From positions 62,001 to 126,000 of IMG/VR virus record IMGVR_UViG_3300042887_005053: DNA of 64,000 bases. One strand, 5' to 3'. Position 1 is the stretch's first letter. Every line of letters starts with the position of its first letter. Under the pieces are notes generated by a model. It was given only the letters and a program-made list of their open reading frames with translations. It ran no database searches and was not told the origin of the DNA. Positions 8,383 to 60,842 of the stretch are shown piece after piece. The position numbers were made by a program, and so were the translations under genes.

Positions 8383-11300
8383 ATGGCTTTAGTTAATTTT
8401 TCAATACCTAATATACCGAGTTTTAAAAGTACTACACCTAGTCCTAAACCAATTTTGTTTGTTCCAGATGTTGAAAAACTAATAAAATTTGCACAAGGTG
8501 ATCTTGGAATAGCAGATAGTATAAGAACTAGTATGATAGTTACTAATATTGCTAAGTGCACTGATCCATTTCAACTCGAAAGCTTTCTTAAAGCAGCTGG
8601 TGGCAAATTGAAAAATCCAATTGAATCATACTTTCAAGATGGTAGACTAACATTCGATCCTTCGGATTTATCAATTGATCCAAAGCCAGGTGATCTAGGT
8701 GGATTAAAATCATTGGAAAAAGCTTTGTTTCAATCAATTTTCGACACACAAAAACCTTATGTTGAGATAATTAAACTTGTTACTGAAAATTTAGTTAAGA
8801 TAGAAGACATTGTTGCAAGAGTATTGGCCGCTGGGGGTTCATCTATGAAACCAGCTGATAATCCTAAAGCTCTTGGTTATAAAGGAAATTCAGAAGTAGC
8901 TCAAAGTATGTTTAAACTACAAAGTCTAGCCAAACCATCAACTTCAAATCAAAATCAAAATCAAAATCAAGATCAGAATGTTGAAAGTAATACTCCTGAA
9001 GAAAAAACTGCTGAAGTTTTACCTCCTGGTTTTAGTTACGCAACTCAATCAATTTTATATTCAACAGGAGAGTTTGATCCTACAGTTGATTATACATACA
9101 TCTACAAAGATTTCAAAGATGATAGTATTGTTTTACCAGATGGCACTGCTTCAGCCACTGCCAATCAAGATGATGAAAAACCAAAGGTAGTTGTTTTTGG
9201 TATATTTGATAGTACTTGGAAGCCATTACAGAGTTCTTTCATAGATACTCCTATACAGACTGCAAACTCAAATGGTACGGTTCAAAAAAATGTAAATTGG
9301 TTAAAAAGATCGAATAAGTGGTTTAATAAATTTGACCAATATGTAGAAGGTACAGATTTCTCATATCAAACTGACGCAGACGGCAATATAATATACTATG
9401 GTTCAAATGAAGGTCCATCAGTTACTTTAGAAGGAGAAACTAAATATGTAAAAGAAGGATTTCCAAAATTAAGTGTTAAAAATGGTCTAATATCCAGTTA
9501 TCGTAATTATTATATTGATGAGACTAGAATTAAACTATCTAAGAGAGAAGATTTAAGTGTTCAGGAAAGACAGAACATAATTAGTGAAATTGGTAAGACA
9601 ATAGATAAAACTGACTCAACCGGAATACCTAACCTACAAAATGTGATTGAAGGCAATCTTAAAAATAGCTTTTGCTCTATCACAAATGAAAATAATACAC
9701 CTGGTTTACCTGCTGATTTCATAACAAATGCTAAGTTTCCTTTCAAACCAAAAAAGATCACTTATAACAGTAAGGAAGTTTGGATAGATCCAGAAGCACA
9801 ATATGATTTGAAAATAATTAAATGTGATTCGTCTATTGATATCAAGTATTTAGATATTGAAGGTGATAGTTCAAAGACTGTATCAACTCAAATATTAAGA
9901 TTCGTCAAAAAAAGTTTAGTTATCAGACTTTCAAATGATGAGAATTTTGATTACATATTAACAGGAACAACTGATACAATTCCTCTACAAGATAACACAA
10001 ATGAATTTGTTTTAGATAATCATAGTGATAGTTCTGCTTATTCAATAGAGATCAGACAGTCTAAGATACCAAATGAGTACTCAGATGGTATAAGTTGGGA
10101 TGAAATAATTGGAAACACTACGACCGGAAATCGGTTTACTCTTACTACAAGTAATGGAACCTCACGATTGAGTATATCATTCTTAGATAGTCAAGTACAA
10201 AATCCAACTTTTAACGACTCATATATTCTACCAAACGGAAAGAAGTTTTTTGTTGATGATAGTGGTGTTCTTTTATATACAGAAATATATAATGGTAGCC
10301 TAAGTGATTATTTACCAAGTAATTTAGAGAAAAATACAGTGATAATCAATATGTCGGACTTTTCACTTACTGAGACAAGAGGTATTATACCTCCTAATTT
10401 AATTAGAGTAAAGGATACTAATTATAAATTTGGTAAATTAATTAGTAATACACAAATAACTAATGAACAACTAGTCACGACTAACCCATATTCAAAAAAT
10501 GGTTTATACGGAACTCCAAACATAAAAAATCAAAACATAGAGCAGATCTATCGTTATATGATAACTGAAGACGACACCGAGACTTATTACATTGTAGAAG
10601 GAATTCTGTCATCTGATAATAAACAAAAATTAAATGCTCCAAATGGTGGATCATCGACAAATGCTTCTGGTAATTCACCAGATAGTGGTGATTATAGTTT
10701 ACCAGATGTAGTAGGCGCTTTTCCAATTTTCATTGAAATGCTTGTAGATATTTTTTCAAAGTTAATACCTTTAATCAATCAATTTATAAACACAATTAAA
10801 AATCCAACGCAAATTGTTTTTAATATTATAGTTGCAAAGATGGGAGATGCATTTGGCACTGAGGCTCCTAAGTTTGGTTTCTTCTCATCTGACTTCTTGA
10901 ATGATTTGAGAAAATTACGTAAAATTGAAGATGATGATGTAACAGAGAGAGCAAAAAAAATGAGAGAATTTGTAAATAATTCGAAGTTGTTCAATTATGT
11001 AAATATTGACGAGAATGCTAATCCAAGATTTATTCTTGATGGAATAGCAACTGTGAAACTATTTGGGGATGCTCCTGGTCTGAGCTCACTACCTGGTATC
11101 AAATTTGGTATTGAATCGAATCTAACTAGTTTAGCCAGTTCAGATCCAAAAGAACCTTTTAAGTTGGTGTTTCAAGGTCCAACTGTAAATACTTTAAAAT
11201 CTATACCAGAGTTATCAGGTTTAGTTGCTAATCTTGAGAATTTGAAATCAAGTGCTCTATCAAATGTAAATTTAGAACCAAAACTTGAGATACCTTCTGA

Positions 11301-12297
11301 GATTCAACAACCTAATGGCCAATTTGAAGATGTTTCTATACAATATTCAACTGGTGTATTTAGAGAGGATGTTGACTACAAATATATTTATATAACAGAA
11401 GAATCTAAAAAATTAGTAGATGAAGCAAAAAAATACGAAGAAGAAGGTGACCTAAACAAAGCAGTAAGTTTGCTTGAAGATGCTGCTAAATTAGATCCAA
11501 ATAATTCATTTATTTTTGATAAGTTAGAACAACTTAAAAAGTTATCTGAGTTAATGAGAACTAATCCTATATTTGATTTTTTACTGAATATTGTTACTCT
11601 ACCCCTGAAGGTCATATTCAATGTAGTTGAATATATTATGAATTTTTTCAAATCTCTAACAAATCCATTTGAGTTACCAGGAGCGATTGCTGAATTTGTT
11701 TCATTCAAATGGTTAAAGGATTTGTTTGACCCAACAAGTAAAAAGAGTATGTTTGCACTGGCTGGTATATTATTTGATGTTCCAACTTTTACTAAAGAGT
11801 GGTTACCTAGTTTAATATCTGGTTCAAAAAACGAATTTGATTTCAATAAAATTATCAAACTTCCTTGGGTCATGAGACTTCCTAAATTTAGTTTAGAACA
11901 GTTTAGATTTTTGACATTTGGATACTATGGTAAACCAACTCCAAATTTGATACCTCTTCAGATGTTAAATGCAATTCTATCTTTAATTGAAAAAATAATA
12001 AATGCTTTTATAGATTTTGTCTGGAGTCTTTTAGGATTAGGTGCAATAATTGATCCACCCTATGTCAGACTAACGAGAGATTTTAATTTAGCAGAAAATA
12101 TGAGTCCAAAAGATATTTTGGATTTACTATCAGGTAATTATAAAGATCCAAACAGTGAAGAAAATTCAAATAAAGAGTACAACTTTGCTTATGAAATTAA
12201 GGCACCTGATGGTAGAGATATTAGAGATTTGAACTACGAAGAGTTACAAAAATGGGTAGATGAGAATAAAAACCTGCAATTTGTTTATAACTTTTAA
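8383..12297 (+). CDS. Large putative structural protein with one TPR-like helix pair and amphipathic helical ends
   Basis: 1304 aa; TAATATATA at 8370; EEEGDLNKAVSLLEDAAKLDPNN is TPR-like; internal repeat YSTGxFxxxVDYxYIY occurs twice. Confidence 0.55.
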   Translation: MALVNFSIPNIPSFKSTTPSPKPILFVPDVEKLIKFAQGDLGIADSIRTSMIVTNIAKCTDPFQLESFLKAAGGKLKNPIESYFQDGRLTFDPSDLSIDPKPGDLGGLKSLEKALFQSIFDTQKPYVEIIKLVTENLVKIEDIVARVLAAGGSSMKPADNPKALGYKGNSEVAQSMFKLQSLAKPSTSNQNQNQNQDQNVESNTPEEKTAEVLPPGFSYATQSILYSTGEFDPTVDYTYIYKDFKDDSIVLPDGTASATANQDDEKPKVVVFGIFDSTWKPLQSSFIDTPIQTANSNGTVQKNVNWLKRSNKWFNKFDQYVEGTDFSYQTDADGNIIYYGSNEGPSVTLEGETKYVKEGFPKLSVKNGLISSYRNYYIDETRIKLSKREDLSVQERQNIISEIGKTIDKTDSTGIPNLQNVIEGNLKNSFCSITNENNTPGLPADFITNAKFPFKPKKITYNSKEVWIDPEAQYDLKIIKCDSSIDIKYLDIEGDSSKTVSTQILRFVKKSLVIRLSNDENFDYILTGTTDTIPLQDNTNEFVLDNHSDSSAYSIEIRQSKIPNEYSDGISWDEIIGNTTTGNRFTLTTSNGTSRLSISFLDSQVQNPTFNDSYILPNGKKFFVDDSGVLLYTEIYNGSLSDYLPSNLEKNTVIINMSDFSLTETRGIIPPNLIRVKDTNYKFGKLISNTQITNEQLVTTNPYSKNGLYGTPNIKNQNIEQIYRYMITEDDTETYYIVEGILSSDNKQKLNAPNGGSSTNASGNSPDSGDYSLPDVVGAFPIFIEMLVDIFSKLIPLINQFINTIKNPTQIVFNIIVAKMGDAFGTEAPKFGFFSSDFLNDLRKLRKIEDDDVTERAKKMREFVNNSKLFNYVNIDENANPRFILDGIATVKLFGDAPGLSSLPGIKFGIESNLTSLASSDPKEPFKLVFQGPTVNTLKSIPELSGLVANLENLKSSALSNVNLEPKLEIPSEIQQPNGQFEDVSIQYSTGVFREDVDYKYIYITEESKKLVDEAKKYEEEGDLNKAVSLLEDAAKLDPNNSFIFDKLEQLKKLSELMRTNPIFDFLLNIVTLPLKVIFNVVEYIMNFFKSLTNPFELPGAIAEFVSFKWLKDLFDPTSKKSMFALAGILFDVPTFTKEWLPSLISGSKNEFDFNKIIKLPWVMRLPKFSLEQFRFLTFGYYGKPTPNLIPLQMLNAILSLIEKIINAFIDFVWSLLGLGAIIDPPYVRLTRDFNLAENMSPKDILDLLSGNYKDPNSEENSNKEYNFAYEIKAPDGRDIRDLNYEELQKWVDENKNLQFVYNF

Positions 12298-18456: not shown

Positions 18457-20382
18457 TTATTTTTTTATTATTTTACAAGTTTGTGATTGTGAATTAGCTT
18501 TCATATTTGCAAAGTACAAACCACTTGAAAAATTCGATATATTATCTTGATAGATATATTTACCAGCTGGCATATCCTGATTTATAATCATCTGATTAGT
18601 GACACCGTTCGGATCTGAAATATAAATCAAGACCGCTCCTGCATTTTTTACTTCAAACTCCAATGTTATCTCTCCAGTTGTTGGATTTGGATAAACTTGA
18701 AAAACTTGATCGTTCTGACCAGCAACTTTAGTGACAACCACAACACCATTTGAAGGGTTAATATTTAAATCTTTTGAAAATTCATTTCCTGAGAACTTTC
18801 TTGTTGTAAATAATGGTGAAAAATCCCAGTCACTTTGAGGTTGTTTAGCTAAAAATCTTAGTGTAAAGATTTGATCATCATTATTAACTAAATACTCTAG
18901 TTCAGCTGTTGGGTCATATCCACCCCATTCAATAGTATTATCTCTAGTATTTAAGAATGTCAACCACATCATAGTTTTCTCAGAATTCAAAATATCTTTG
19001 AACTCAAGAATTTCAGGATTATACATTACAGCAAGTTGTAAAGAAGATACTTGTTCACCATTAGTTAAAACTTTAACTGGTACTTCAACTAAGTTTCCTT
19101 CACTAACAGTGAGACTCGGCATATTTATTTCTATATCAGATGTTGGAAAATCGTACTGAACTCTTAAATCAATAACATTCTCTGTTGCTGATGGATATTC
19201 TGGGTGGTTTACTTCAACATTTATTGGTGTCAAACGAGCCATGTGGAAACCAGTACCATTTGCATCACCAGGAACTAAAACATAAAATTGAACTGAACTT
19301 GGTTGACCAGGTAAAATATTATACACAAAGTTTGTAACACCTGATATAGAAGATGTATAGTTATTTGTTGGATTTGTAGTAATAGTATTAAACTCTGTTT
19401 GTGTAAAAAACTTTATATCAGATGTAGAGTTAGGCCAAGTTGTAAATCTACCAGCAATTCTACCAAATACGCCATAAGCATCACTAATGGTTACATTGTT
19501 ACTTGAGTTCACATCAGCACTGTAAAAATCAAATCCAGATGGATTAGATGTGCCTAAAACCCATTGATTGATCAACTCAGCATCTGCAGTTGAAATTACA
19601 TTACCAACATTCATAGTGTCTCCTTGAACTGAAATCCTTACATCAAAGAATGTGGTATCGATTGATTCATTAAAAGAAAAATAACCATCTACATTTGTAG
19701 TGTATGTATCATGTATAGACCAAACGCTACCTGTTTTTGGTTTCTTTTCTAAAGCAACAGATAAATTCTTAGCACCAGATCCAGTAACATTTGTGAATGT
19801 GCCTGAAAAATTCAAAGTGTGTAAAAGAAAGTTACCACCATAATTATGTAAACTAAGAGGTAGATCGAAACCTGGTTGAGTCGCAACATAACTTGTGTAG
19901 TTATTAGTTGGTATTAAAGTCGTCCAACTAAGATTGTTTATACTTGTTATATTTGTAAATATAGAACTCTCAACATGCTCAAAGGTCAATTGGAATGTTT
20001 CTCCATTTGATAAACTAAAAGTGCTACTATTACCGGTATAAACTAAAGTAATTGTTATATAACCTTGAGCATTGTTGTCTACATATTGTAAATAAAGATT
20101 CGATGAAGACCCAACTAAATTTACACTACAAGATGTAAAAGCTGTGTTATCATAGAACACTCTAAACTGAGTACCTGTTGTTAAAGTAGTTGTAGTATTT
20201 TGTAGGGTTATCAAAGCAACTGTTTGGCCTTGATTAGTAGTACCAACTGTATAGTTAGTATCGATAATAGCCCAAATGCCATTACTTGGCGCAGGTGGTC
20301 CACTTTGTGAGTAAAGTGAAACTGGTAATGTAGACAACAATGTCAAGATTACCACCGAAAGGACGGATTTCAGTAGTTTCAT
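18457..20382 (-). CDS. Cohesin/dockerin-like protein with T9SS C-terminal sorting domain
   Basis: Signal peptide; two cohesin-like domains (QFRVFYDNT; VEVPVKV..SLQLAVMYNPEILEF); DVNSSNNVTISD; C-terminal VYPNP...GLYF...KIIKK. Confidence 0.8.
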   Translation of the reverse strand: MKLLKSVLSVVILTLLSTLPVSLYSQSGPPAPSNGIWAIIDTNYTVGTTNQGQTVALITLQNTTTTLTTGTQFRVFYDNTAFTSCSVNLVGSSSNLYLQYVDNNAQGYITITLVYTGNSSTFSLSNGETFQLTFEHVESSIFTNITSINNLSWTTLIPTNNYTSYVATQPGFDLPLSLHNYGGNFLLHTLNFSGTFTNVTGSGAKNLSVALEKKPKTGSVWSIHDTYTTNVDGYFSFNESIDTTFFDVRISVQGDTMNVGNVISTADAELINQWVLGTSNPSGFDFYSADVNSSNNVTISDAYGVFGRIAGRFTTWPNSTSDIKFFTQTEFNTITTNPTNNYTSSISGVTNFVYNILPGQPSSVQFYVLVPGDANGTGFHMARLTPINVEVNHPEYPSATENVIDLRVQYDFPTSDIEINMPSLTVSEGNLVEVPVKVLTNGEQVSSLQLAVMYNPEILEFKDILNSEKTMMWLTFLNTRDNTIEWGGYDPTAELEYLVNNDDQIFTLRFLAKQPQSDWDFSPLFTTRKFSGNEFSKDLNINPSNGVVVVTKVAGQNDQVFQVYPNPTTGEITLEFEVKNAGAVLIYISDPNGVTNQMIINQDMPAGKYIYQDNISNFSSGLYFANMKANSQSQTCKIIKK

Positions 20383-50735: not shown

Positions 50736-51973
50736 TTAAAACCCACCACTAAAAATGTCCATTATAACAGTAAGCCTTTTAGATATTTCCGGCAGTCCAA
50801 GAGGCGCAATAATCGAATTAATTGGACTCAATATACACTTTTCAAATTGAGTATCTAAGTCAATCTCAGGTGCCATCTCAATAGGATATGATCCTCTAAT
50901 GTAAGCAAAAGTATCATTCATTGATTTATCTTTGACATAGTAATACTTGATCTTAGTTCCAGATTTGATAAACTCATACTTAGATTGTAAAGATTTATTT
51001 CTATGTAGTAAGAAGTTATAATAAGCAGAAGCTTTAACAGCAAAGTGAGCTCCACTAACAAACTCTAATTTGTCCTTATCATTCAAACACTTATCATCAT
51101 AATTTGAACAAGAAGATTGCATACAGATCTCATCTATTCGATCTGGTACACACAAGTCAAACTCTTTTCTTAAATTCTTTACTAACTTTAGTAACTCCTT
51201 AATGTTAAATGTATCTGGGTGTTCAAACAAATATTTAACAATACCAACAATCTTATCTCTTGCAAAAAGAGGAGTAGATGATCTCACAAGTTCAACTCCC
51301 TTAGGATACATATAAGTCAATCTATCATAAGGAATTCCATCTTCATAAACAATATGTTGAATATACTTCTTTTTAGCAATGTTTATAATTGATTCAGAAA
51401 TACGCTCTAACTCAAAATCTTGTTTGTTTTCAACACCATACTCAGCAGCATGTTCATCTAAACATTTTTTGAAATATCCAGCATATCTATTCTTATCTAA
51501 TGCATGAATAAACTCTAATTCTGTTTTGTATGCATGTTTCCATTCACAATGATCCATCGCTGGCTTAAATGATACAAAAAGTGAATCAGTATCAGCATAT
51601 ATAGAAACTTGCTCATCTCTTTCAATTGGAGTAACATTTTTGAGATTCATTTTTTCATGCAACTCAGTATCTAAATGCCATTGATTATACCAATAGTCTT
51701 CATTTACTTTATGCATTGTTTGCGTCAGGTTTCTACCTTCAGCTGTTATGGTTCCAGCAACATGGTTATTAAATAAAATAAAATAGGGTGTTGCGAATGC
51801 ACCGTAACTACCATTTAACACTAACTTCAAAGCTTTTTTTCACCCCCTCTGAAAATAATCAGAGGGGGTTATCTAGCGAGCTGAAGAGCGTTGAAATAAT
51901 CAACTTCCTTCTTCAGCTCGTTTGCTTGTTTTTTTAGTGACTCGATCTTTTCTAATCTTTCTTCTCTAGTCAT
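50736..51973 (-). CDS. Family-B DNA polymerase C-terminal subunit (gp43B-like), in two segments: 51973-51875 and 51830-50736
   Basis: Joined product reads ...YFNALQLA|LKLVLNGSYG (motif B), then IT.EGR, YADTDS, KKKY, KGVE; no exonuclease domain or motif A. Confidence 0.85.
51831..51877 (-). other. Candidate programmed translational bypass element (44-nt gap)
   Basis: GCT(51877-75) AGA TAA, 11-bp perfect stem (51869-59/51852-42), G-A7, GCT(51833-31). Confidence 0.7.
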
Positions 51974-52041
51974 TAATTTTTATTTTTTGTAAATTTGTTC
52001 TAAACAGAACTAATGGTATTTAATATATTAACTTAAATAAC

Positions 52042-53061
52042 ATGACTTATATGTTTAAAGAAGAAGAAGTTTTAGTTAAGATCAATGCTCGTAATGTCAA
52101 TTACTATAAAGAAAAAGGATATGATGTATCTATATCTGGGTTCACTGACTCAAAAGATTTTTTAGTAAAAACATTGGATATACCCAAAGGTTCACATTTG
52201 AAAATAATCGCAATCTGTGAATTGTGTCAGTGTGAAAAAAATATATCGATTGAGAAATATTATACAAATAAAGAAAGAAATAATAAAGGATATTATTCAT
52301 GTTTTAGTTGTAAGACAGTAGAAAAAGAAAAAACTTGCTTGAATAAGTATGGTGTAAAATCATACTCACAAACAAGTGAGTTCAAAGAGTCTGAAAGTAA
52401 AAAGTGGAAAGGAATACAGAAAGGTTCAGAAAAAGGTAAAAAAACTAATTTAGAAAGATATGGATTTGAATCTTTTTTTCAAACAGAAAAGATGAGAGAA
52501 ATGAATAGAAGTTGGATGTCATCTGATGAGTTTAGATCAAAATCAAAACAAACAATATTAGAAAAATATGGAGTTGATAGTTTTTCAAAAACATCCAATT
52601 TTAGAAACATAATTAATGAAAACAAAGAACAGATAGTAGAAAAAATAAAACAAGTTTTTTTGGACAAGTATGGTGTTAATTGGCCATCTAAAGTAAAAGA
52701 TATTGTCGATAAGTCCTTAAAAACTAGAGAGGAAAATGGTGATATCATACCACCTGAAAATTTAAGTGATTTTCAAAAATACCGAAAATTAGTTAGGAAA
52801 ATTACCAATAGAAATAAGAAAAAACTTTTTGAGGACTGGCTTGGATTTGACTATTATGATAACGAGTTTATTAAAGGTAATTTTTCACTATCATCATCAC
52901 ACAGACTATATCCAACAATTGATCATAAAATATCGATACATTACGGATTTACAAATAAAATATCAGCCTCTGAGATAGGCCATTTAGACAATTTATGTAT
53001 AACAAAAAGAAGAATTAACTCAACGAAGAGACAGTTAATAGAAGAAGTATTTAACTCATAG
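52042..53061 (+). CDS. Putative free-standing homing endonuclease (Zn-ribbon, KYGV repeats, C-terminal HNH-like domain)
   Basis: CELC..CFSC; four (K/R)YG(V/F) repeats; PTIDHKISI...NLCIT...N.TK. Confidence 0.75.
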   Translation: MTYMFKEEEVLVKINARNVNYYKEKGYDVSISGFTDSKDFLVKTLDIPKGSHLKIIAICELCQCEKNISIEKYYTNKERNNKGYYSCFSCKTVEKEKTCLNKYGVKSYSQTSEFKESESKKWKGIQKGSEKGKKTNLERYGFESFFQTEKMREMNRSWMSSDEFRSKSKQTILEKYGVDSFSKTSNFRNIINENKEQIVEKIKQVFLDKYGVNWPSKVKDIVDKSLKTREENGDIIPPENLSDFQKYRKLVRKITNRNKKKLFEDWLGFDYYDNEFIKGNFSLSSSHRLYPTIDHKISIHYGFTNKISASEIGHLDNLCITKRRINSTKRQLIEEVFNS

Positions 53062-53078: not shown

Positions 53079-54401
53079 TTAAATACCAGTATAATTAGTT
53101 GGACTCATACTTTTTAATTCTTTTTTTATGAGTTCTGGTATTTCTAATTGGTCGATAAATTGGTTGATTACTTCTTGGTCTATTTCTTTTCCTCTAGCAA
53201 GTTCTTTAAGTTTTTCGTAGGGTTCTTGTACTTTTTCTCTTCTTAAAACAGTTTGGATTCCTTCGGTTACAACAGACCAATTATTTTCTAAATCTTCTGT
53301 TATTACTTCTTCATTTAATACAAGTTTATCTATTCCTTTTTTAATTGAGTCTATACTTATTGTAATGTGCGCAATTGGAACCCCGATATTTCTGAGTACA
53401 GTTGAATCTGTTAAATCTCTTTGTAGTCTTGAGATTGGTAGTTTTTCTGATAGATGAGTTAGTATAGCATTTGCCATTCCTAAATTTCCTTCTGCATTTT
53501 CGAAGTCGATTGGATTTACTTTGTGTGGCATTGCTGAAGAACCGGTTTCATTTGGATTCGTTTTTTGATTGAAATAGTTCATAGAAATGTATTGCCAAAT
53601 ATCTCTACAAAAATCAATTAGAATTACATTGATTCTTCTTAGGTTGTCGAACAAAACAGCAAGTGAATCATAATGATCAATTTGAGTAGTATATTGAGAC
53701 CTTTTTAATCCCATTTTTTGAGTGAAAATATTTGCAAATTCTTTCCAATCGATTTGTGGATAAGCTACATGATGGGCATTAAAGTTACCTGTTGCTCCGC
53801 CAAATTTACAAGAAAGTTCTATTTTATGTAAACTAAGAATTTGATTATCTAATCTTTCAACAAATACCATTAATTCTTTGTCCATTTTGGTTGGAGAAGC
53901 AGGTTGACCGTGTGTATGAGCAAGCATTGGTGTGTCTTTACAATTATCTGACAAAGACTTAATCTTATTATTTAGTTCGGTTATATCTTTGATATAAGTA
54001 TTTAGCCAATTAAGAAGTTGTAAAGGAATTGCTGTGTTATTAATATCTTGTGATGTTAGACCAAAATGAACAAACTCTTTGAATTCAGATAGGTTAAGTT
54101 TTTCTAATTTTGTTTTGATAAAATACTCGACTGCTTTTACATCGTGATTGGTCTTTTTTTCGATTTCTTTTATCTCATTAGCATCGGCTTCACTAAAGTC
54201 ATAGTAAATACTCATAAGATCATTAGCATTAGGTATGTTAAGATTTATGGCATTATTTAGTTCAATTAAATATTTGACTTCAACATATACTCTATATTTA
54301 ATAAGAGCGAATTCCGAAAAGAATTCTGATAGTTTTTGAGTTTTGTTGTGATATCTACCATCAATTGGACTTACTGAGGTTAAGGGTGTTAATTTATTCA
54401 T
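53079..54401 (-). CDS. purB: Adenylosuccinate lyase
   Basis: SPIDGRY, TNHDVKAVEY, HFGLTSQD, GSSAMPHKVNPIDFEN; start probably the ATG at 54401. Confidence 0.95.
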   Translation of the reverse strand: MNKLTPLTSVSPIDGRYHNKTQKLSEFFSEFALIKYRVYVEVKYLIELNNAINLNIPNANDLMSIYYDFSEADANEIKEIEKKTNHDVKAVEYFIKTKLEKLNLSEFKEFVHFGLTSQDINNTAIPLQLLNWLNTYIKDITELNNKIKSLSDNCKDTPMLAHTHGQPASPTKMDKELMVFVERLDNQILSLHKIELSCKFGGATGNFNAHHVAYPQIDWKEFANIFTQKMGLKRSQYTTQIDHYDSLAVLFDNLRRINVILIDFCRDIWQYISMNYFNQKTNPNETGSSAMPHKVNPIDFENAEGNLGMANAILTHLSEKLPISRLQRDLTDSTVLRNIGVPIAHITISIDSIKKGIDKLVLNEEVITEDLENNWSVVTEGIQTVLRREKVQEPYEKLKELARGKEIDQEVINQFIDQLEIPELIKKELKSMSPTNYTGI

Positions 54402-55179
54402 CGTCTGCGGTAAAGTCTTGTTCAAAGCTGAGCATCAAATTTGAGTTTTCGTCTTTGACTAAAATAAAGGTTTCGAAAATACTGAAATAAATGTTGTCAT
54501 TTTGATCATTAATATTTGATAAATATTTTTTACCAAAAATTAATTGTGTGTTTTTAGCATCAACTTCATCAACTATAAGTTCCCATTTTGATAGTTCATT
54601 CATAGTTACTTTATTATCAGTTACATTAATATTAACAATTCTTTCTTCGTTGTTAATACCACAAAGTTTCTTAACATCTGCGAAATCTTCTTTAGAAATT
54701 TTGAATGACCACTTTGATAATTTTGGATTTAGTCTTGTTTCTAAAAATTGTGGATTTAGATCACGGATTTTGTGTTGTTCTCCACCAACAATAGTGATTT
54801 TCAGTTTGTTATTTGTAAACTGTGCTGCTCTAACATGCATAGTATCTTCTGAGTCTGGACTTGGTTTGAATACTAAATCTAGTTTAATAGTCGAGTTAGT
54901 GTTAAATAAAGCTAAGTTCTTAGCAAATTTTGTAGCAGAAGTGATGATTAAATCGAAAGTAGTATCTTGTTTGAAACCTTCAATATAGTCATCTGTCTTC
55001 AAGAGATAAGTTTTAAGTGCTAAAACACTAACATCGTTAGATATCATTGAATAGAGTAGAATATTAGAACTTGTGATTTTAATTTTAACACAGTCTTCAA
55101 TATTAGTGAGGTCTTTGAATTTTTGTAGAAAGTCACTAAAGTTATTTTGATTAAATTTTAATGCTAATTTATTTGCCAT
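54394..55179 (-). CDS. Putative DNA sliding clamp (gp45/PCNA-like)
   Basis: About 260 aa with twofold repeated alpha/beta pattern; close to the polymerase gene; no diagnostic motif. Confidence 0.45.
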   Translation of the reverse strand: MANKLALKFNQNNFSDFLQKFKDLTNIEDCVKIKITSSNILLYSMISNDVSVLALKTYLLKTDDYIEGFKQDTTFDLIITSATKFAKNLALFNTNSTIKLDLVFKPSPDSEDTMHVRAAQFTNNKLKITIVGGEQHKIRDLNPQFLETRLNPKLSKWSFKISKEDFADVKKLCGINNEERIVNINVTDNKVTMNELSKWELIVDEVDAKNTQLIFGKKYLSNINDQNDNIYFSIFETFILVKDENSNLMLSFEQDFTADDE

Positions 55180-55224: not shown

Positions 55225-55665
55225 TTAGTCAAACCACTTATTGAGTATTTGATTTATTTTCTTGTCTCTCGATATTAATTCTGAATTATTCTCAAATCTA
55301 TCTAAATATTCTAGCGTTTTAATTTGTCTATAGAGTGAAGAAAAGAAACAAAATCCTAATATAGAAGTTAGTCCAGCTAATGATTTTGAATTCATACTTA
55401 GACTAATAATACTTCCGGAAATTTCAATTAAAAATATTTTCAAATCAAATAGACTAACAAATAGTCCTGATATAAAACCAGATAAATAAATAGGCCAGTT
55501 TTTATTTTCGTTTGATTTGAAGTTAATAAGAAATAAAAGTAAAGTAACTAAAAATAGAGATAAAAAAATATTAGTCAAGTTTTGAATATTACCAAACAAA
55601 AGTGGAGGCAAAATCAAAAAAACAAGACTAAATATTAGATATTCTTTTTTTGTAGAACTACTCAT
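55225..55665 (-). CDS. Multi-TM membrane protein
   Basis: About four hydrophobic helices; C-terminal RDKKINQIL. Confidence 0.6.
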   Translation of the reverse strand: MSSSTKKEYLIFSLVFLILPPLLFGNIQNLTNIFLSLFLVTLLLFLINFKSNENKNWPIYLSGFISGLFVSLFDLKIFLIEISGSIISLSMNSKSLAGLTSILGFCFFSSLYRQIKTLEYLDRFENNSELISRDKKINQILNKWFD

Positions 55666-56756
55666 ATCTTTATTTTATCAAAATAGTCTTTGAATGTTTC
55701 GTGAGGTACTGCTACAGATATTCTTGAGTATTGTGAATTTACAGTTCTATTAAGTGAAAATTTGTTTAAAGGAACTGAAGATATTTTATTGAATAAGAGT
55801 ATATCGAAATTAATATTCACGATTGCAAAGGGACCTGTTGGTAGTGTTGGATATTCATCAAAAAGAAATCCTCTATCTTTTAGATATTGAATATTCTTTT
55901 TAATACTCATTTGTGTTTGTAATTTGTAATTATCTAATGATAATTTTCCATTGTCTGTTGTGAGTAATCGAGTTATTATTTGTTGTGGTATGGTTGAAAT
56001 AGAGTTATACTTATATAAAGATCTAATCTTCATTGAGTTATATAATTCTTGATTTTTTGTTGCTATGTAGCCGATTCTTAATCCAGATAATCCCATAGAT
56101 TTAGAAAAAGAAGATAATACGATTACATTATCATAAAATAATTCGTGGATAGGATTAGTCAAATCGTTGAAAAGATAGTAATATGGTAGATCTAAAATAA
56201 CTGTAATATTATTTTCCTTTGTGTGATCTAAGAATTTTTTTAGTTCTTCGAAGTCTGGTGCCCATCCTGTTGGATTAGAAGGATAACACAACATTACAAC
56301 CCCTGAGAAGCCATTTATTGGATCAAAGGCTTTAAAATTTGATATGTTGAAGTCATCGAATTCTTGCGTGTTTTTACCATGAATTTTAAGAATTTTGTTC
56401 CAAGATCCCCAGTGGTATTTTGGTATCCAGAAGTTTTCTTCAGATAACGAATTAATTACTAAGTCGAGTGTTGCCATACCACCTGGTACAGTCATCACAT
56501 AGTGGTCTTTTAACTGAAATTTATCTTTAATAACTTCTACTAATTTAGTATCTCCATCATTCCCACCGTATTGTTGAACTGTTTTTTGATTGTAGTCAAA
56601 GTCACTCATAAAAGAATTTAAGTCGATCATATCGACATCCATAACACCACGATGAAGTTTCAAATAAGTCTCTCCTGTTGTTTTTTCGAGGTAAGAAGTT
56701 CTTTCTCCTATTTCGACGATTGATGAATAGGTAACTGGTGAATGGTTTACTTTCAT
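55662..56756 (-). CDS. PLP-dependent aminotransferase class I/II
   Basis: YPSNPTG, ILDLPY, SSFSKSMGLSGLRIGY. Confidence 0.85.
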   Translation of the reverse strand: MKVNHSPVTYSSIVEIGERTSYLEKTTGETYLKLHRGVMDVDMIDLNSFMSDFDYNQKTVQQYGGNDGDTKLVEVIKDKFQLKDHYVMTVPGGMATLDLVINSLSEENFWIPKYHWGSWNKILKIHGKNTQEFDDFNISNFKAFDPINGFSGVVMLCYPSNPTGWAPDFEELKKFLDHTKENNITVILDLPYYYLFNDLTNPIHELFYDNVIVLSSFSKSMGLSGLRIGYIATKNQELYNSMKIRSLYKYNSISTIPQQIITRLLTTDNGKLSLDNYKLQTQMSIKKNIQYLKDRGFLFDEYPTLPTGPFAIVNINFDILLFNKISSVPLNKFSLNRTVNSQYSRISVAVPHETFKDYFDKIKI

Positions 56757-57586: not shown

Positions 57587-57847
57587 TTGTATTTATATAT
57601 ACCAGAAATAATCTTGTTTAAGAGAATGGATATTAAATTTGAAATCGAAAAGGCTCAAAAAATTGAAATTCTCAATGATAATGATTTACAAAGTGTAAAA
57701 GAATTATACTTTTCTAAGGATGGTATTTTACCAAAAATTTATAATTTTGCTACTACGAAAAAAGGAGAAGAGTCTTCACTTATTTTATCGGATTTAAATA
57801 AAATCAGAAGTATAATTACCAAAAAAATAAGTGATTATACTAGCTAA
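57587..57847 (+). CDS. Hypothetical protein
   Basis: ORF track; true start may be the internal MDIKFE. Confidence 0.4.
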   Translation: MYLYIPEIILFKRMDIKFEIEKAQKIEILNDNDLQSVKELYFSKDGILPKIYNFATTKKGEESSLILSDLNKIRSIITKKISDYTS

Positions 57848-59000
57848 TAACACTAACTACTTCAGGATAATACTCACAAGCTTCTGGATTTTTGCCTTCA
57901 TAGTTAATAACTGATAATGCATATCTCATGGCATTTAATCTACCAATTCTTTTATCGTTTGAATTGATTATTGTCCAAGGAGCTTTTTTAGTTGATGTTT
58001 TTTCAAACATCTGATTTTTGTACATTGTAATAATATTCCACTTTCCGATTACTTTTTCATCGTTTGGTGAAAACTTCCAGAATTTAATAGGTGATGTTTT
58101 TCTTAATTCAAATCTTTGAATTTGTTTTTCTTGTGTTATAGAAAACCAAAACTTAATTAAAGTAATTCCTTGATTAACTAATCCAGCTTCCCACTTATTA
58201 ACATTTTCCATGAAATCTCTATACTGTTCTTCAGTACAATATCCCATAGCTGGTTCAACTACAGCTCTGTTATACCAAGAACGATCAAAGAAAACAATTT
58301 CACCAGGTTTAGGTAATTCTTTTTCGTATCTCGCAAACCAATTATTCTTTTCTTCTTCAGTTGGCATTCCAAGAGCAACAATTCTGAATATTCTTGGATT
58401 CAAAACTTCTGTGAATCTTTTTATAGTAGAACCTTTACCAGCTGAATCTCTACCTTCAAAAACTATTGCAATTCTTTGATTTGTATTTTTAACCCATTCT
58501 TGTAGTTTAACTAGTTCAATTTGAATTTGGTATTTTTCATCTTCGTATTGTCTTCTTGTTAGAATAGATTTTTCACCTTCCATTCTGTCAATGTGTTCTT
58601 CTTCTGGTGATAAACCTTCAGCTTTTTCAATGTATTCATCAACTCTATCGATTAATGACTCATAGTAGATTTCGAATTCTGCTGAAATCATTTTTTTGGT
58701 CCTTTTTCCTTTTAAATCGAGTAGTTGGTGTATTTTTCTTAAAAAAGTTTCTGTATTAAAAAAAGTAACTATTTCTTTAGTGAATTCTTTTTCTAGTTCA
58801 CTTAAAATCATTTCAATATCGATATTGTCAAAATCTTTATAGATTACTTCGCCTTTTTCTGTAGAAATATTTTCTAATATAAAATCACGATAAGTGTTCA
58901 ATCTCATCACAAATTGATTTTCGATATCTTGAAGTTCTTCTACTGGTAGTTCGAATTCTAATTCTTCGTTTAGAAATGTATTAAATGGTTTGAGTTTCAT
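57840..59000 (-). CDS. ppk2: Polyphosphate kinase 2 with N-terminal extension
   Basis: FEGRDSAGKGSTIKR, FDRSWYNRA, IKFWFSI, WKFSP.D, APW...S.DK. Confidence 0.93.
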   Translation of the reverse strand: MKLKPFNTFLNEELEFELPVEELQDIENQFVMRLNTYRDFILENISTEKGEVIYKDFDNIDIEMILSELEKEFTKEIVTFFNTETFLRKIHQLLDLKGKRTKKMISAEFEIYYESLIDRVDEYIEKAEGLSPEEEHIDRMEGEKSILTRRQYEDEKYQIQIELVKLQEWVKNTNQRIAIVFEGRDSAGKGSTIKRFTEVLNPRIFRIVALGMPTEEEKNNWFARYEKELPKPGEIVFFDRSWYNRAVVEPAMGYCTEEQYRDFMENVNKWEAGLVNQGITLIKFWFSITQEKQIQRFELRKTSPIKFWKFSPNDEKVIGKWNIITMYKNQMFEKTSTKKAPWTIINSNDKRIGRLNAMRYALSVINYEGKNPEACEYYPEVVSVIS

Positions 59001-59011
59001 ATAATTATATA

Positions 59012-59914
59012 TTAAATTTTTGAGTCAAATATATAAACATCAAAAGTAGTATTACCTTTGACTTTTTTAATCTTTTTAAGTACATCGCCTGATATTGAAT
59101 CCAAAACTTTAAATACTCCAATATTCGTTCCTTTTTCATCTAATATCTTAACTGTATTTCCTGGTTGACCGAGTGCACCAAGCATTGCTACATATTTGTT
59201 TCCATAAATACTTTTTAAGAAAGAAACTCTAATATTTGCAACATCCTTAATATTATTTACATAAGGATTGTCTAATGGATTATTTAAATCTAAGATTGTA
59301 TCAGTTGCTTTAGCTTTAACTGTGACGAATTTTCTGGTTTCTTCTCCTAAGGTTATATCTTCTTTATTTTGAATTTCTTGTGATTTAATTAAAGCTTGTT
59401 GATTTTTTCTTATTTCGTTAAAATCAGCTCTTGCTAAAATTCCACCTCTCATTCCTTTGTCATTCATATTATATCCTGATGGTGGAAGTCTATAGAAAGA
59501 ACCTGTAAATGTAACTGATAAAAGTCTATCGAATCTAAATAGCCTCCAAATTTTATTAATATGTCTATTTCCTGATACAGACCATCCATTTAAGTGGTAT
59601 CCTCTTATTAAAAATTTCCCTTTAGATGATTTACCGATAACCATTGGATAAATCACTCTTTCTGATCCCATAAATCTTTTATCTTTTTCCCCTTTATAAT
59701 TGATAAGAAAAACCATTCCATATTTAATAGCCTTCATAATGAGTTCTTGTGTGGGTTTTAGTGGCTCATTAACTGGTATATCCGCTATATTTTTAATATT
59801 TTTTAATTGAAATCTAGGAACATAGGAATTATCCTCTTTTAGGTTATAATTCTCTTTAATTACAAACTCAATTGGCTTGGTGTTAAAATAATTTTTTACT
59901 TGACTTATGTTCAT
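59012..59914 (-). CDS. WYL-domain-like protein
   Basis: INY...ERVIYP...LIRGY...WRLFRFDRL. Confidence 0.6.
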   Translation of the reverse strand: MNISQVKNYFNTKPIEFVIKENYNLKEDNSYVPRFQLKNIKNIADIPVNEPLKPTQELIMKAIKYGMVFLINYKGEKDKRFMGSERVIYPMVIGKSSKGKFLIRGYHLNGWSVSGNRHINKIWRLFRFDRLLSVTFTGSFYRLPPSGYNMNDKGMRGGILARADFNEIRKNQQALIKSQEIQNKEDITLGEETRKFVTVKAKATDTILDLNNPLDNPYVNNIKDVANIRVSFLKSIYGNKYVAMLGALGQPGNTVKILDEKGTNIGVFKVLDSISGDVLKKIKKVKGNTTFDVYIFDSKI

Positions 59915-60842
59915 TATATTTAAATATCTTTTTAGATTTTATAAGTGAAAGTAAATTATTGATTTTCACATTTTTATTATCATGTATTACGTGAAGAATA
60001 TTTTTATATATTTTGTTATCTTTTTCACTTTTTATTTCTTTATCCATTAGTATCAAATATTGTCCAAAATTATTTTCAATTTTTGATTGAAAATAATCAA
60101 TTTTTGGATGAGATTTATATCTCCATAGATATCCTGCAGTTTGAAACCTTTCTCCCATACAAACTTGATTTATTTTAGATAGACTAATTTTATTATACAT
60201 TGATGCTTCTGTTAAGGATTTATATTCTGTTTGATTATTTAAATAATCAATTCTTGTAACAGGATACTGTTTTTTGTTTCTTATTCTTTCTTCAAATTTA
60301 TCTTCTTTATATAAAAATATAAATTTATTTTTCCATATTTTTATATCACCATTGCATATTTGACTAATAGTCTGTGGATGAGTATTATTCATCTCACCAG
60401 CCTCCTTTACTGATTTGTATTCTTCTATAAAATTACCATCTATATCATATTTAACCACTGGTCTATTTAACTTTTCTATGTAATCATTTTTGTGTTTATA
60501 TCCAATAAAAGTTTCACCACCCTTGGTATAATTTGTTAAAGGACCTGTTTTATCCACAATTCTACCTATTTCTCTTATTAGTTTTATTTCTATTTCTATA
60601 GCCTCTTCATTTGTGAGGTTATTTTGGATTTTTCTTATAATTGGTTCTATTCCTGCCTTTTGTATTTTTAATATCTTATTATTCTTTAGTGGATTCCATT
60701 CTTTAATTTTAAGATGTCTGAGATATCTTGATTTTTTGCCTTTACCAATATAAAATGGTTCATATTCTAATTTGTATCCATCATAGTTATATTGTCCTGG
60801 TTTTCTTGGATCCATATAGACATAGATATAATATTCATTCAT
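59883..60842 (-). CDS. GIY-YIG homing endonuclease with NUMOD1 repeats
   Basis: YYIYVY.DP...FYIGKG..R..H, E..LI...G...LTN; two YKS..EA...I.Q.C.G modules. Confidence 0.8.
   Translation of the reverse strand: MNEYYIYVYMDPRKPGQYNYDGYKLEYEPFYIGKGKKSRYLRHLKIKEWNPLKNNKILKIQKAGIEPIIRKIQNNLTNEEAIEIEIKLIREIGRIVDKTGPLTNYTKGGETFIGYKHKNDYIEKLNRPVVKYDIDGNFIEEYKSVKEAGEMNNTHPQTISQICNGDIKIWKNKFIFLYKEDKFEERIRNKKQYPVTRIDYLNNQTEYKSLTEASMYNKISLSKINQVCMGERFQTAGYLWRYKSHPKIDYFQSKIENNFGQYLILMDKEIKSEKDNKIYKNILHVIHDNKNVKINNLLSLIKSKKIFKYNEHKSSKKLF

Follow-up and report, generated by a model that had tools for sequence, protein, structure and literature searches.

A nuclease gene and a hairpin insert in a phage DNA polymerase gene: a possible independent analogue of the T4 mobA/gene 60 cassette

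In the 64-kb stretch of large-phage DNA analysed in this work (referred to below, in its whole length, as the window), a free-standing gene of an HNH-like endonuclease is placed back to back with polB-C, the gene for the C-terminal subunit of a split family-B DNA polymerase, and the reading frame of the latter is interrupted by a short coding gap (Table 1). The original prediction placed the nuclease gene 68 nt from the polymerase start, in divergent orientation, and about 165 nt from a gap of 44 nt. Orientation, spacing and gap length were confirmed in the sequence, with 168 nt measured between the gap start and the nuclease ATG, and this anatomy can be regarded as shown. What had to be corrected was the term 'polymerase start', as only the gene for the C-terminal subunit begins there and not the whole polymerase. 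The N-terminal PolB half is absent from the window according to Pfam scans of 30 ORFs and to tblastn with the N-terminal subunit of MA9V-2; no tRNA genes are present in the window either. The same split of PolB is common to relatives that have neither the gap nor the HNH gene, and to Chryseobacterium phage MA9V-2. We conclude that the split predates the nuclease, which was not its creator.

Table 1. Features of the polB-C locus, with positions as numbered in the window
Feature	Position	Strand	Description
polB-C main reading frame	50736..51830	-	Resumes at TTG (Leu); motif B KLVLNGSYG, motif C YADTDS, thumb; Pfam DNA_pol_B, E = 9e-14
Coding gap, 44 nt	51831..51874	-	Spacer AGA, stop TAA, hairpin, A-rich tail, landing GCT (51833-51831)
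GC-rich hairpin	51843..51868	-	Perfect 10-bp arms (51868-51859 and 51852-51843), 6-nt loop; 6 nt past the take-off codon
polB-C 5' coding segment	51875..51973	-	ATG (51973-51971) through take-off GCT (51877-51875), 33 codons
Divergent intergenic region between nuclease gene and polB-C	51974..52041	.	Exactly 68 nt, read from the sequence; within the exchanged block
HNH-like endonuclease gene, free-standing	52042..53061	+	Intact ORF, 339 aa
Adenylosuccinate lyase gene purB	53079..54425	-	Pfam Lyase_1 and ASL_C; left flank of the proposed cassette

The 5' coding segment of polB-C encodes the fingers-helix sequence leading into motif B, and its protein product is conserved with that of gap-less homologues. 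The frame runs for 34 codons and then meets the TAA codon (51871-51869), and the motif B sequence LKLVLNGSYG restarts at 51830 in a different frame, 44 being a non-multiple of 3. Deletion of exactly 44 nt, by which the take-off GCT is joined to the landing GCT, gives the continuous sequence ...NALQLA|LKLVLNGSYG, as found in L001, L002 and L014.

Since the hairpin within the gap is without a counterpart in the 64-kb window, whose GC content is 29.8%, since with its flanks it folds strongly (-34.7 kcal/mol, z = -6.3), and since an independent assembly, L053, carries an insert identical to that of the window, it cannot be considered a product of chance. It was rejected as an intrinsic terminator on either strand, as it is not followed by a T-run on the mRNA strand and went unflagged in a terminator scan. 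It was also rejected as a dispersed repeat, being present in one copy in the window, and all 43 perfect GC hairpins detected in 879 kb of related loci were located at the polB site. A search of Rfam over the gap returned only sub-threshold chance matches, with no family reaching the threshold.

The nuclease bears at its N-terminus a Cys4 zinc ribbon, of which residues C59, C62, C87 and C90 are invariant in 15 homologues. It also contains KYG-repeat modules (Pfam DUF7487, E = 1e-13), and its C-terminal domain is of the beta-beta-alpha-metal type, with D294-H295...N317...N326 again invariant in 15 homologues. In the AlphaFold model, pLDDT is 92-95 over the C-terminal 100 residues, and the predicted strand-strand-helix has pLDDT >90. 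The HNH label of the original prediction requires a qualification. No curated HNH model of Pfam or NCBIfam matched the nuclease, or its C-terminal domain taken alone (E up to 10), and sequence searches against PDB chains gave nothing useful. The label is based on the DH...N...N motif, on matches to PHROG families named 'homing endonuclease', and on fold matches. The top matches of the fold search against PDB were Cas9 HNH domains and Gme HNH nickase, with probability of 0.85-1.0, yet with weak E-values (0.03-0.25); in BFVD, proteins described as endonuclease-like, homing or HNH endonucleases were matched with E down to 1e-12. Thus, by its fold and by its catalytic and metal-binding residues, the protein is inferred to belong to the HNH (His-Me finger) superfamily; there is no biochemical evidence, and neither DNA cutting nor the cut site has been demonstrated. 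Elsewhere, members of this family are free-standing genes placed between conserved genes of T4-like phages, for example between those of tail sheath and tail tube. Among the best 80 family members in IMG/VR, 56 are located beside other genes without a hairpin nearby, and no convincing case of the hairpin arrangement was found at these 56 non-polB loci.

The check that accompanied the original prediction, namely whether the gap and the HNH gene occur together in relatives, was run on 77 unique, assessable loci (43 gapped and 34 ungapped), and its result was strongly positive. An adjacent divergent HNH gene accompanies the gap at 29 loci; at 13 the gap is present without it, and at one (L008) only a decayed HNH remnant is left. 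No adjacent nuclease is found at 30 of the ungapped loci, and a full-length HNH gene of the window type is found at none of the 34. The remaining four gap-less alleles lie beside related nucleases, which in L059 and L072 have the nuclease domain in common with that of the window and a different N-terminus, in L077 have the N-terminus in common and a different C-terminus, and in L114 are truncated by the contig end. The two HNH groups correspond exactly to upstream and downstream gap positions (17/17 and 12/12, respectively). This co-distribution is shown. At least eight changes of the gap state are placed on the polB-C tree, and a change of HNH parallels that of the gap in 5-6 independent contrasts and opposes it in none; a sign test on these contrasts was borderline (median p 0.06, only 6 pairs). 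The decayed HNH gene of L008, the gapped alleles free of HNH, and L042, in which a GIY-YIG gene occupies the place of the HNH gene, are the signs of a life cycle expected of a homing endonuclease gene.

Comparison of closely related loci shows that a block of DNA has been exchanged. Polymerase genes which are otherwise near-identical diverge sharply from the HNH gene to the gap, and in near-identical genomes the block that differs is bounded by the 3' end of the HNH gene on one side and by the 3' edge of the gap on the other. When L025 is compared with L031, the upstream flank is identical, the HNH gene appears as a clean insertion of ~858 nt, the 5' segment of polB-C shows ~80% identity, with synonymous differences clustered just before the gap, and ~97% identity starts at the first base past the gap. 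A similar pattern was observed for L020 and L024 versus L021, and for the window versus L054, where the intergenic region is unalignable though downstream polB-C is 96% identical. In pairs that are at least 90% identical downstream and differ in cassette state, DNA identity of the 5' segment falls to 0.61-0.84. Empty sites, in which the purB end lies ~30-40 nt from the polB-C start and the nuclease gene is absent, are found in L063, L006, L064, L067 and L068. Only modest extra support came from a tree of the 93-nt 5' segment (15 versus 26 gap-class changes). As far as the comparative data can tell, the nuclease gene and the insert appear to be exchanged as one unit in many related phages.

At least 43 distinct inserts, 36-48 nt in length, occupy seven positions in the relatives, all of them inside 33 nt of motif B, and gapped alleles are widespread in independent samples. 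Six of the positions are A|L, L|K, V|L, S|Y, Y|G and G|A; the seventh, G|S, is found in a more distant lineage. The take-off and landing triplets match (GCT/GCT(A), CTY/CTA, GTT/GTA(T), TCT(G)/TCA and GGT/GGC, with GGT/GGT at the seventh position), being synonymous at all positions save for some of the Y|G inserts. Among the approximately 20 unique inserts at Y|G, 9 have TAY as the landing triplet and most others differ from it at the first base, so that about half of them do not land on a Tyr codon. The match as such is shown; short target-site duplications remain a possible alternative explanation of it.

In nearly all inserts a hairpin begins about 6 nt past the take-off codon, and in most of them one of the two codons between the take-off codon and the hairpin is a stop. 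The stop directly abuts the take-off codon in the V|L and S|Y classes, whereas most inserts of the A|L, L|K and Y|G classes have a sense codon first and the stop one codon later; an early stop is missing in a few inserts (L007, L008, L021, L111 and L119). The intervening sense codons and the missing stops weigh against the reading that we favour. Covariation of the hairpin stems is shown by compensatory changes in the inner stem among 39 inserts. A tally of the listed insert lengths reveals no preference for multiples of three.

Strong purifying selection acts on both reading frames that flank the gap. The dN/dS ratio is 0.17 for the 5' segment of gapped alleles, and downstream of the gap it is 0.03-0.09 between gapped lineages, equal to that between gap-less ones; selection on polB-C is equal also in gapped alleles without an adjacent HNH gene. 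In Y|G alleles, the sequence before the gap supplies the essential residues K, N and Y of motif B, and that after it the rest of the enzyme. Motif B is likewise split across the gap in G|A and S|Y alleles, and none of these three classes has a start codon past the gap. As the length of most gaps is not divisible by 3, stop-codon recoding or read-through was rejected. Re-initiation at the post-gap TTG was likewise dismissed as a general mechanism, a start codon being absent from this place in other gap classes.

The reading that we favour, with moderate confidence, is that positions 51831-53061 constitute a homing-type mobile cassette, composed of the HNH gene, a cassette-borne copy of the 33 codons with which polB-C begins, and the 44-nt insert; the cut site, the immunity conferred by the insert and ribosomal bypassing are all inferred. 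During mixed infection, the nuclease would nick or cut the uninterrupted motif-B DNA of a phage devoid of the insert, and repair would copy the entire block from the carrier phage, whose own gene would be spared, its recognition site being split by the insert. Both the cutting of gap-less motif-B DNA and the protective effect of the insert were already part of the original prediction; they fit the comparative data and are still no more than inferences. In translation, peptidyl-tRNA would be held on the take-off codon GCU, and a very stable hairpin 6 nt downstream, at the mRNA entry site, together with a stop within two codons, would block normal decoding. The ribosome would then slide across the gap, the tRNA would re-pair with the landing GCU, and decoding would restart at UUG. 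Formation of a single polypeptide from two frames through bypassing is also inferred, with only indirect support from selection on both frames, from the lack of a post-gap start codon in several classes and from the absence of a frame preference in insert length; there are no RNA or protein data.

A bolder reading, to which we would give slightly less than an even chance, is that the insert represents a minimal portable bypass module, consisting of a hairpin and an A-rich tail, which, with no need for a dedicated nascent-peptide signal, would let ribosomes hop over 36-48 nt with any one of seven or more codons as the starting point, and which would have been used repeatedly for immunity in an arms race of HNH groups recognising different halves of the motif-B DNA.

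The closest known counterpart is the mobile bypass cassette MobA/gene 60 of phage T4, reportedly described by Bonocora et al. in 2011, and called 'unique' in the survey of Manning and Atkins from 2022 (bioRxiv 10.1101/2022.08.31.505936). Both systems combine a free-standing HNH gene with a coding gap of ~40-50 nt that interrupts an essential replication gene. Take-off and landing codons match in both, and each gap has a stem-loop, an A/U-rich 3' part and, here in most of the inserts, an early stop. Both elements also have their own diverged copy of the upstream coding sequence and end at the landing codon. In the case of the T4 MobA element, lineages were described in which the endonuclease is decayed, lost or replaced by a GIY-YIG enzyme and the gap is kept (bioRxiv 10.1101/2022.08.31.505936), as is also seen here.

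The differences are nevertheless considerable. The host gene is polB here and that of the topoisomerase II large subunit in T4, and the T4 element splits the topoisomerase gene and adds new N- and C-terminal tails, whereas the polB split is independent of the HNH gene. Unlike in T4, the nuclease gene lies outside the reading frame, on the opposite strand. The hairpin described here is long and GC-rich and begins 6 nt past the take-off codon, while the stem-loop of gene 60 contains the take-off codon; seven alternative insert positions contrast with one in T4; and gene 60 has a dedicated nascent-peptide signal, of which no counterpart is evident here. No homology to MobA was detected by tblastn or by the family profile against the T4 60.1-mobA region, although the T4 copy is defective, which limits this test.

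Some features are shared with other systems. Collaborative homing of F-CphI and the psbA group I intron of cyanophages (reportedly, Zeng, Bonocora and Shub 2009) also involves a free-standing endonuclease beside a gene, a target interrupted by a separate insertion that gives immunity (only inferred in our case), and joint spread; there, however, the interrupter is a self-splicing intron removed from RNA, and not a hairpin of 36-48 nt with features pointing to the ribosome. The 'byps' of Magnusiomyces capitatus mitochondria, reported to be 27-55 nt long and skipped in translation (Lang et al. 2014), are similar in that they, too, are short, structured and rich in GC, reside in a genome rich in AT and have take-off and landing triplets that match. 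They are scattered over many genes with no link to an endonuclease, whereas here all copies are at one site and the insert is linked to an HNH gene. Bacillus phages SPO1 and SP82 also have HNH enzymes, I-HmuI and I-HmuII, in the introns of their DNA polymerase genes. In these phages, too, such an enzyme accompanies an interruption that falls in a conserved part of the polymerase gene; I-HmuI and I-HmuII differ from the free-standing gene in being encoded within group I introns of a family-A polymerase gene.

Could the insert be removed at the level of RNA, as a mini-intron or by cleavage and ligation, with the HNH enzyme still being its homing partner, as for F-CphI and the psbA intron? Conserved polymerase motifs are classic sites of introns and homing endonucleases. 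Also in favour of this possibility are the structured character of the insert RNA, with its covariation, and the absence of a matching landing codon from about half of the Y|G inserts. On the other hand, an element of 36-48 nt with a single hairpin is far smaller than any known self-splicing intron and belongs to no Rfam family at threshold, and matching at the codon level, the fixed 6-nt distance of the hairpin and early stops are features read by a ribosome and not by a splicing process. We therefore regard RNA-level removal as unlikely. Hardly more credible is linkage without function, according to which the hairpin would be a tolerated independent insertion (a mobile GC cluster or a repair scar), and the HNH enzyme, unrelated to it and having another target nearby, would be co-converted with it owing to the proximity of ~170 nt. 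The gapped alleles without HNH, the four gap-less ones with HNH relatives, the GIY-YIG gene of L042 and the 56 family members residing beside other genes without a hairpin could be explained in this way. Against it speak the absence of any other such hairpin from the window or from 879 kb of flanking sequence, the packing of seven insertion positions into 33 nt, the exact correspondence of HNH groups to gap positions with no full-length HNH of the window type at a gap-free allele, and the coincidence of the block boundary with the 3' edge of the gap.

One might also suppose that the HNH protein is not a DNA homing enzyme and that it assists expression, as a maturase-like or hairpin-binding factor that helps the insert to be skipped or removed. 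In one direction the co-occurrence is indeed strict, and divergent genes could be co-regulated; nevertheless, one gapped allele in three lacks an adjacent HNH gene and is under equal selection on polB-C, and the occurrence of the family as free-standing genes between conserved genes of T4-like phages is typical homing endonuclease behaviour, which makes such a role very improbable. The possibility that gapped polB-C is a broken gene, or encodes two separate polypeptides, with another polymerase doing the work, can be practically dismissed. The reading frame is formally interrupted, and the polymerase of this phage group already consists of two subunits; yet low dN/dS values are maintained on both sides of the gap in long-gapped lineages, no post-gap start codon is available in the Y|G, G|A and S|Y classes with their split motif B, and gapped alleles are widespread.

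Returning to the homing-type cassette, comparison supports the view that the locus is an independent analogue of the T4 mobA/gene 60 cassette, although cleavage by the nuclease and bypassing by the ribosome have not been shown experimentally. The independent origin of the T4 strategy assumed in the original prediction is supported by the lack of detectable similarity to the mobA region, by the different host gene and by the different gap design. In the literature that we searched, the arrangement of a homing nuclease with a bypass insert is described only for gene 60 of phage T4, and, to our knowledge, no programmed translational bypassing is known in bacteria or phages outside gene 60 and its homologues, all of them topoisomerase genes. 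If the proposed reading is true, this would be a second, unrelated origin of bypassing, in another essential gene and another group of phages, with an endonuclease that has no detectable similarity to the mobA region. For annotators, a locus working as proposed would provide a concrete reason to treat 'frameshifted' polymerase genes of large phages as intact. The inserts would also constitute a natural mutational series of at least 43 variants at seven positions, in which hairpin position, codon matching and the A-rich tail are constant and the adjacent stop is optional. A general rule would gain support as well, namely that homing endonucleases could enter the most conserved coding DNA by means of an insert that costs the protein nothing. 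Should the bolder reading prove correct, translational bypassing would be an evolvable, general solution and not a peculiarity that arose once in T4.

The window carries, on its minus strand, a gene for the C-terminal portion of a DNA polymerase of family B (Pfam DNA_pol_B). The reading frame of this gene, polB-C, is interrupted in motif B by a 44-nt hairpin insert. Deleting the 44 nt that follow the first GCT (Ala, 51877-51875), up to and including the second GCT (51833-51831), gives a product that reads QLA/LKLVLNGSYG (the slash marking the junction), as in uninterrupted homologues, three of which (loci L001, L002 and L014) read ...DYYNALQLALKLVLNGSYG... at this place. The identical insert occurs in an independent metagenome assembly (L053), and with its flanks it has a folding energy of -34.7 kcal/mol (z = -6.3). 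The gap is genuine and its position exact.

The original prediction placed an HNH-like endonuclease gene 68 nt from the polymerase start, divergently, and about 165 nt from the gap. This description was accurate: a 339-aa ORF runs in the opposite direction from 52042, at distances of 68 nt (polymerase ATG) and 168 nt (gap). The start in question is, more correctly, that of polB-C, the gene for the C-terminal subunit of a polymerase encoded in two parts, and the window lacks the N-terminal half. The division of PolB into two genes is common to gap-less relatives and Chryseobacterium phage MA9V-2 (496- and 425-aa genes, separated by 3.4 kb that include a TnpB gene), and falls about 34 aa ahead of motif B. 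Many relatives carry approximately 75-80 additional polB-C residues (474 aa vs about 397 aa).

Coordinates of features in the window and in related loci (L numbers)
Feature	Locus	Position	Strand	Basis
polB-C start codon ATG	window	51973-51971	-	sequence reading
polB-C first 34 codons (...DYFNALQLAR)	window	51973-51872	-	sequence reading
Stop TAA	window	51871-51869	-	sequence reading
Hairpin, perfect 10-bp GC-rich stem	window	51868-51843	-	sequence reading
Tail TGAAAAAAA then GCT	window	51842-51831	-	sequence reading
Other-frame resumption at TTG-AAG... (LKLVLNGSYG, motif B)	window	from 51830	-	sequence reading
polB-C, PolB split in fingers domain	window	50736-51973	-	
PolB split in a related locus	L133	1-380 and 3839-5116		
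polB-C with extra residues between motifs B and C and thumb	L001, L002	7902-9326		
polB-C stretch compared with these	window	50736-51830		
HNH-like nuclease gene	window	52042-53061	+	
Both carbamoyl-phosphate synthase subunits (914 and 366 aa)	window	286-4097	-	
1304-aa ORF without Pfam match	window	8383-12297	+	
641-aa protein, cohesin domain and type IX secretion C-terminal sorting domain	window	18457-20382	-	
Adenylosuccinate lyase (purB)	window	53079-54425		
Class I/II aminotransferase	window	55662-56756		
Polyphosphate kinase 2	window	57840-59000		
Second free-standing homing-type endonuclease gene, GIY-YIG domain with NUMOD1 and I-HmuI-like DNA-binding modules	window	59883-60842	-	
GIY-YIG gene exactly at HNH place, divergent from polB-C	L042	3023-3784	-	
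Divergent neighbour of gap-less polB-C, HNH-family nuclease domain, different N-terminus	L059	3046-3831	-	
The same	L072	1910-2710	-	
Divergent neighbour of gap-less polB-C, HNH-family N-terminus, different C-terminus	L077	863-2359	-	

The window is AT-rich (29.8% GC) and belongs to a 204-kb IMG/VR contig of a large phage, its closest named relatives being 634-642-kb 'uncultured phage' genomes. A Bacteroidota host is possible, the type IX secretion sorting domain of one gene giving only a hint.

The HNH label of the predicted nuclease must be qualified. No curated HNH model matched it, its only Pfam match being DUF7487; the label is supported by the pattern of conserved residues and by fold matches, and two PHROG families that bear the name 'homing endonuclease' match as well. 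In fifteen homologues, four Cys near the N-terminus are invariant, as is a C-terminal block that includes D294-H295, N317 and N326; from this pattern a His-Me finger (HNH) nuclease may be inferred, cleavage being unproven. An AlphaFold model shows a strand-strand-helix arrangement within the final 100 residues (pLDDT 92-95). Its best PDB matches were Cas9 HNH domains and the Gme HNH nicking enzyme (probabilities 0.85-1.0, weak E-values of 0.03-0.25), and predicted viral structures annotated as endonuclease-like, homing endonuclease or HNH endonuclease proteins matched down to E = 1e-12. The HNH/DUF7487 family occupies at least 166 IMG/VR loci, with several copies on some contigs, sometimes two; among L136-L215, most members adjoin genes other than polB, without a hairpin nearby. 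In T4-like phages, the nuclease domain of the family is also found as a gene of its own, between those for tail sheath and tail tube. Such placement between genes is a habit of free-standing homing endonuclease genes.

Scans of IMG/VR and JGI metagenomes with the polB-C protein yielded 118 loci, and at least 43 different inserts, each 36-48 nt long, are located at six positions of the same short stretch (A/L, L/K, V/L, S/Y, Y/G and G/A, named after the residues on either side); a seventh, G/S, was found in a more distant lineage, and all seven are confined to 33 nt of motif B. The take-off codon is followed by two codons, one of them a stop in most inserts, then by a hairpin (-17 to -34 kcal/mol) whose 5' arm opens with a C run and whose 3' arm closes with a G run, and by an A-rich tail, often with other-frame stops, ending in the landing triplet. 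Of 39 insert sequences, 11-18 have inner stem pairs in which both partners are changed. Take-off and landing triplets are synonymous at A/L (GCT; GCT or GCA), L/K (CTT, CTC or CTG; CTA), V/L (GTT; GTA or GTT), G/S (GGT; GGT), S/Y (TCT or TCG; TCA) and G/A (GGT; GGC). The exception is part of the Y/G class, where about 20 unique inserts take off from TAT or TAC and 9 of them land on TAC or TAT, the rest on AAC, GAC, GAT, AAT, TAA, AGC or AAA.

Two other accounts of the insert may be considered. It could be a general repeat of these genomes; this was ruled out, since the 64-kb window holds no other GC hairpin of this type and all 43 perfect hairpins in 879 kb of related loci lie at the polB gap. 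No comparable structure was found close to 56 HNH family members adjoining other genes. Alternatively, the insert could be translated as extra residues. A tally of listed lengths by residue class modulo three (about 16, 18 and 8) revealed no preference for multiples of three; the insert is therefore not translated in this manner.

Both polB-C frames appear to be in use, an inference from sequence alone, without RNA or protein data. The dN/dS of the downstream frame is 0.03-0.09 between all-gapped lineages and 0.03 between gap-less ones; that of the 30 codons 5' of the gap is 0.17. In Y/G alleles, the essential motif-B Lys, Asn and Tyr are encoded 5' of the gap, and motif C with the remainder of the enzyme 3' of it, with no start codon after the gap; the two parts must therefore join in one protein. 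Rescue on the ribosome, as in gene 60, is likewise inferred, RNA and protein data being absent, from the codon-level match of take-off and landing, the early stops, the A-rich 3' part and a constant 6-nt spacing between take-off codon and hairpin. This spacing would put the stem at the mRNA entrance with the P site occupied by the take-off codon, and the G-rich 3' arm might pair with the 3' end of 16S rRNA.

The co-occurrence check proposed originally was run on 77 loci (duplicates removed, at least 400 nt upstream of polB-C in each), and gap and HNH proved associated. A full-length divergent HNH gene accompanied the gap in 29 loci, a decayed remnant in one (L008) and no nuclease in 13, including that with the GIY-YIG gene (L042). 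Among gap-less loci, 30 lacked a nuclease, one gave a weak distant hit and three (L059, L072, L077) had a related nuclease with one domain swapped, possibly of different specificity or with a target protected otherwise. A further gap-less locus, L114, encodes an N-terminus like that of L026, truncated by the contig end. No gap-less allele had a full-length HNH of the gap-associated type beside it. Gapped and ungapped alleles are interleaved in the polB-C tree (at least 8 changes of gap state and at least 10 of HNH); in 5-6 independent contrasts HNH follows the gap, never in the opposite direction, the sign test being only borderline (median p 0.06) because pairs are few. The HNH tree has two main groups, which cut across the polymerase tree (e.g. 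L009, with Y/G and short HNH, is sister to L006, with L/K): the long type occurs only with the upstream positions A/L, L/K and V/L (17/17), and other types only with S/Y and Y/G (12/12).

Pairwise comparisons support exchange of HNH and gap as a single block with the gap as its edge. The near-identical genomes L025 (gap and HNH) and L031 (neither) have identical upstream flanks until a sharp break, beyond which L025 carries about 858 nt including the HNH gene; the polB-C 5' segments are about 80% identical, with nine synonymous differences in the 30 nt directly 5' of the gap, and identity is about 97% from the first base 3' of it. L020 and L024 (A/L gap, HNH) match L021 (Y/G gap, no HNH) at 97-98% in the downstream genes and at 96% in the upstream flanks; between flank and downstream gene the sequences are unalignable. 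L054, the closest relative of the window, has a different gap, G/A; identity between the two is 96% downstream and 61% upstream. Where two loci were at least 90% identical downstream, identity over the 75 nt upstream of the gap region was 0.61-0.84 when cassette state differed and mostly 0.95-1.0 when it did not. The empty site for the window's gene order is seen in five loci (L063, L006, L064, L067, L068), where the purB end lies about 30-40 nt from the polB-C start.

The best-supported and likely reading is that originally proposed, a mobile cassette of homing endonuclease and bypassed insert analogous to mobA and gene 60. The comparative data support it; DNA cleavage, the cut position and protection by the insert remain inferred, and bypassing is also unproven. 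The insert would interrupt the nuclease target where polB is most conserved, and the polymerase would stay intact through bypassing by the ribosome. Motif-B DNA is suggested as the target, without cleavage data, by the confinement of seven positions to 33 nt, the exact tracking of position with nuclease type and the clustering of synonymous changes beside the gap. The same three observations are also compatible with an arms race in which immunity inserts counter variants of the nuclease and vice versa. As for the mobile cassette, gapped alleles without HNH, the decayed HNH and the GIY-YIG replacement are consistent with the usual life cycle of homing endonuclease genes: once the element is fixed, the nuclease would be dispensable, and loss of the insert would need a precise deletion.

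The block architecture (HNH, polB-C 5' segment, gap edge) matches that of the T4 MobA element, described by Manning and Atkins as an endonuclease, an element-borne homologous region and a bypass, with the landing codon as the end of the element (bioRxiv 10.1101/2022.08.31.505936), and the GIY-YIG gene of L042 parallels the endonuclease replacement reported for that element. The same 2022 survey called the gene 60 cassette unique, every homologue that it identified lying in the topoisomerase gene, and the full-text literature searched contained no description of a bypass cassette in large phages or in a polymerase gene. No similarity of the nuclease to the T4 mobA region was detected. As the original prediction proposed, the polB-C locus seems to be independent of the T4 gene 60 system, and its cassette family constitutes an unusually rich set of natural variants.
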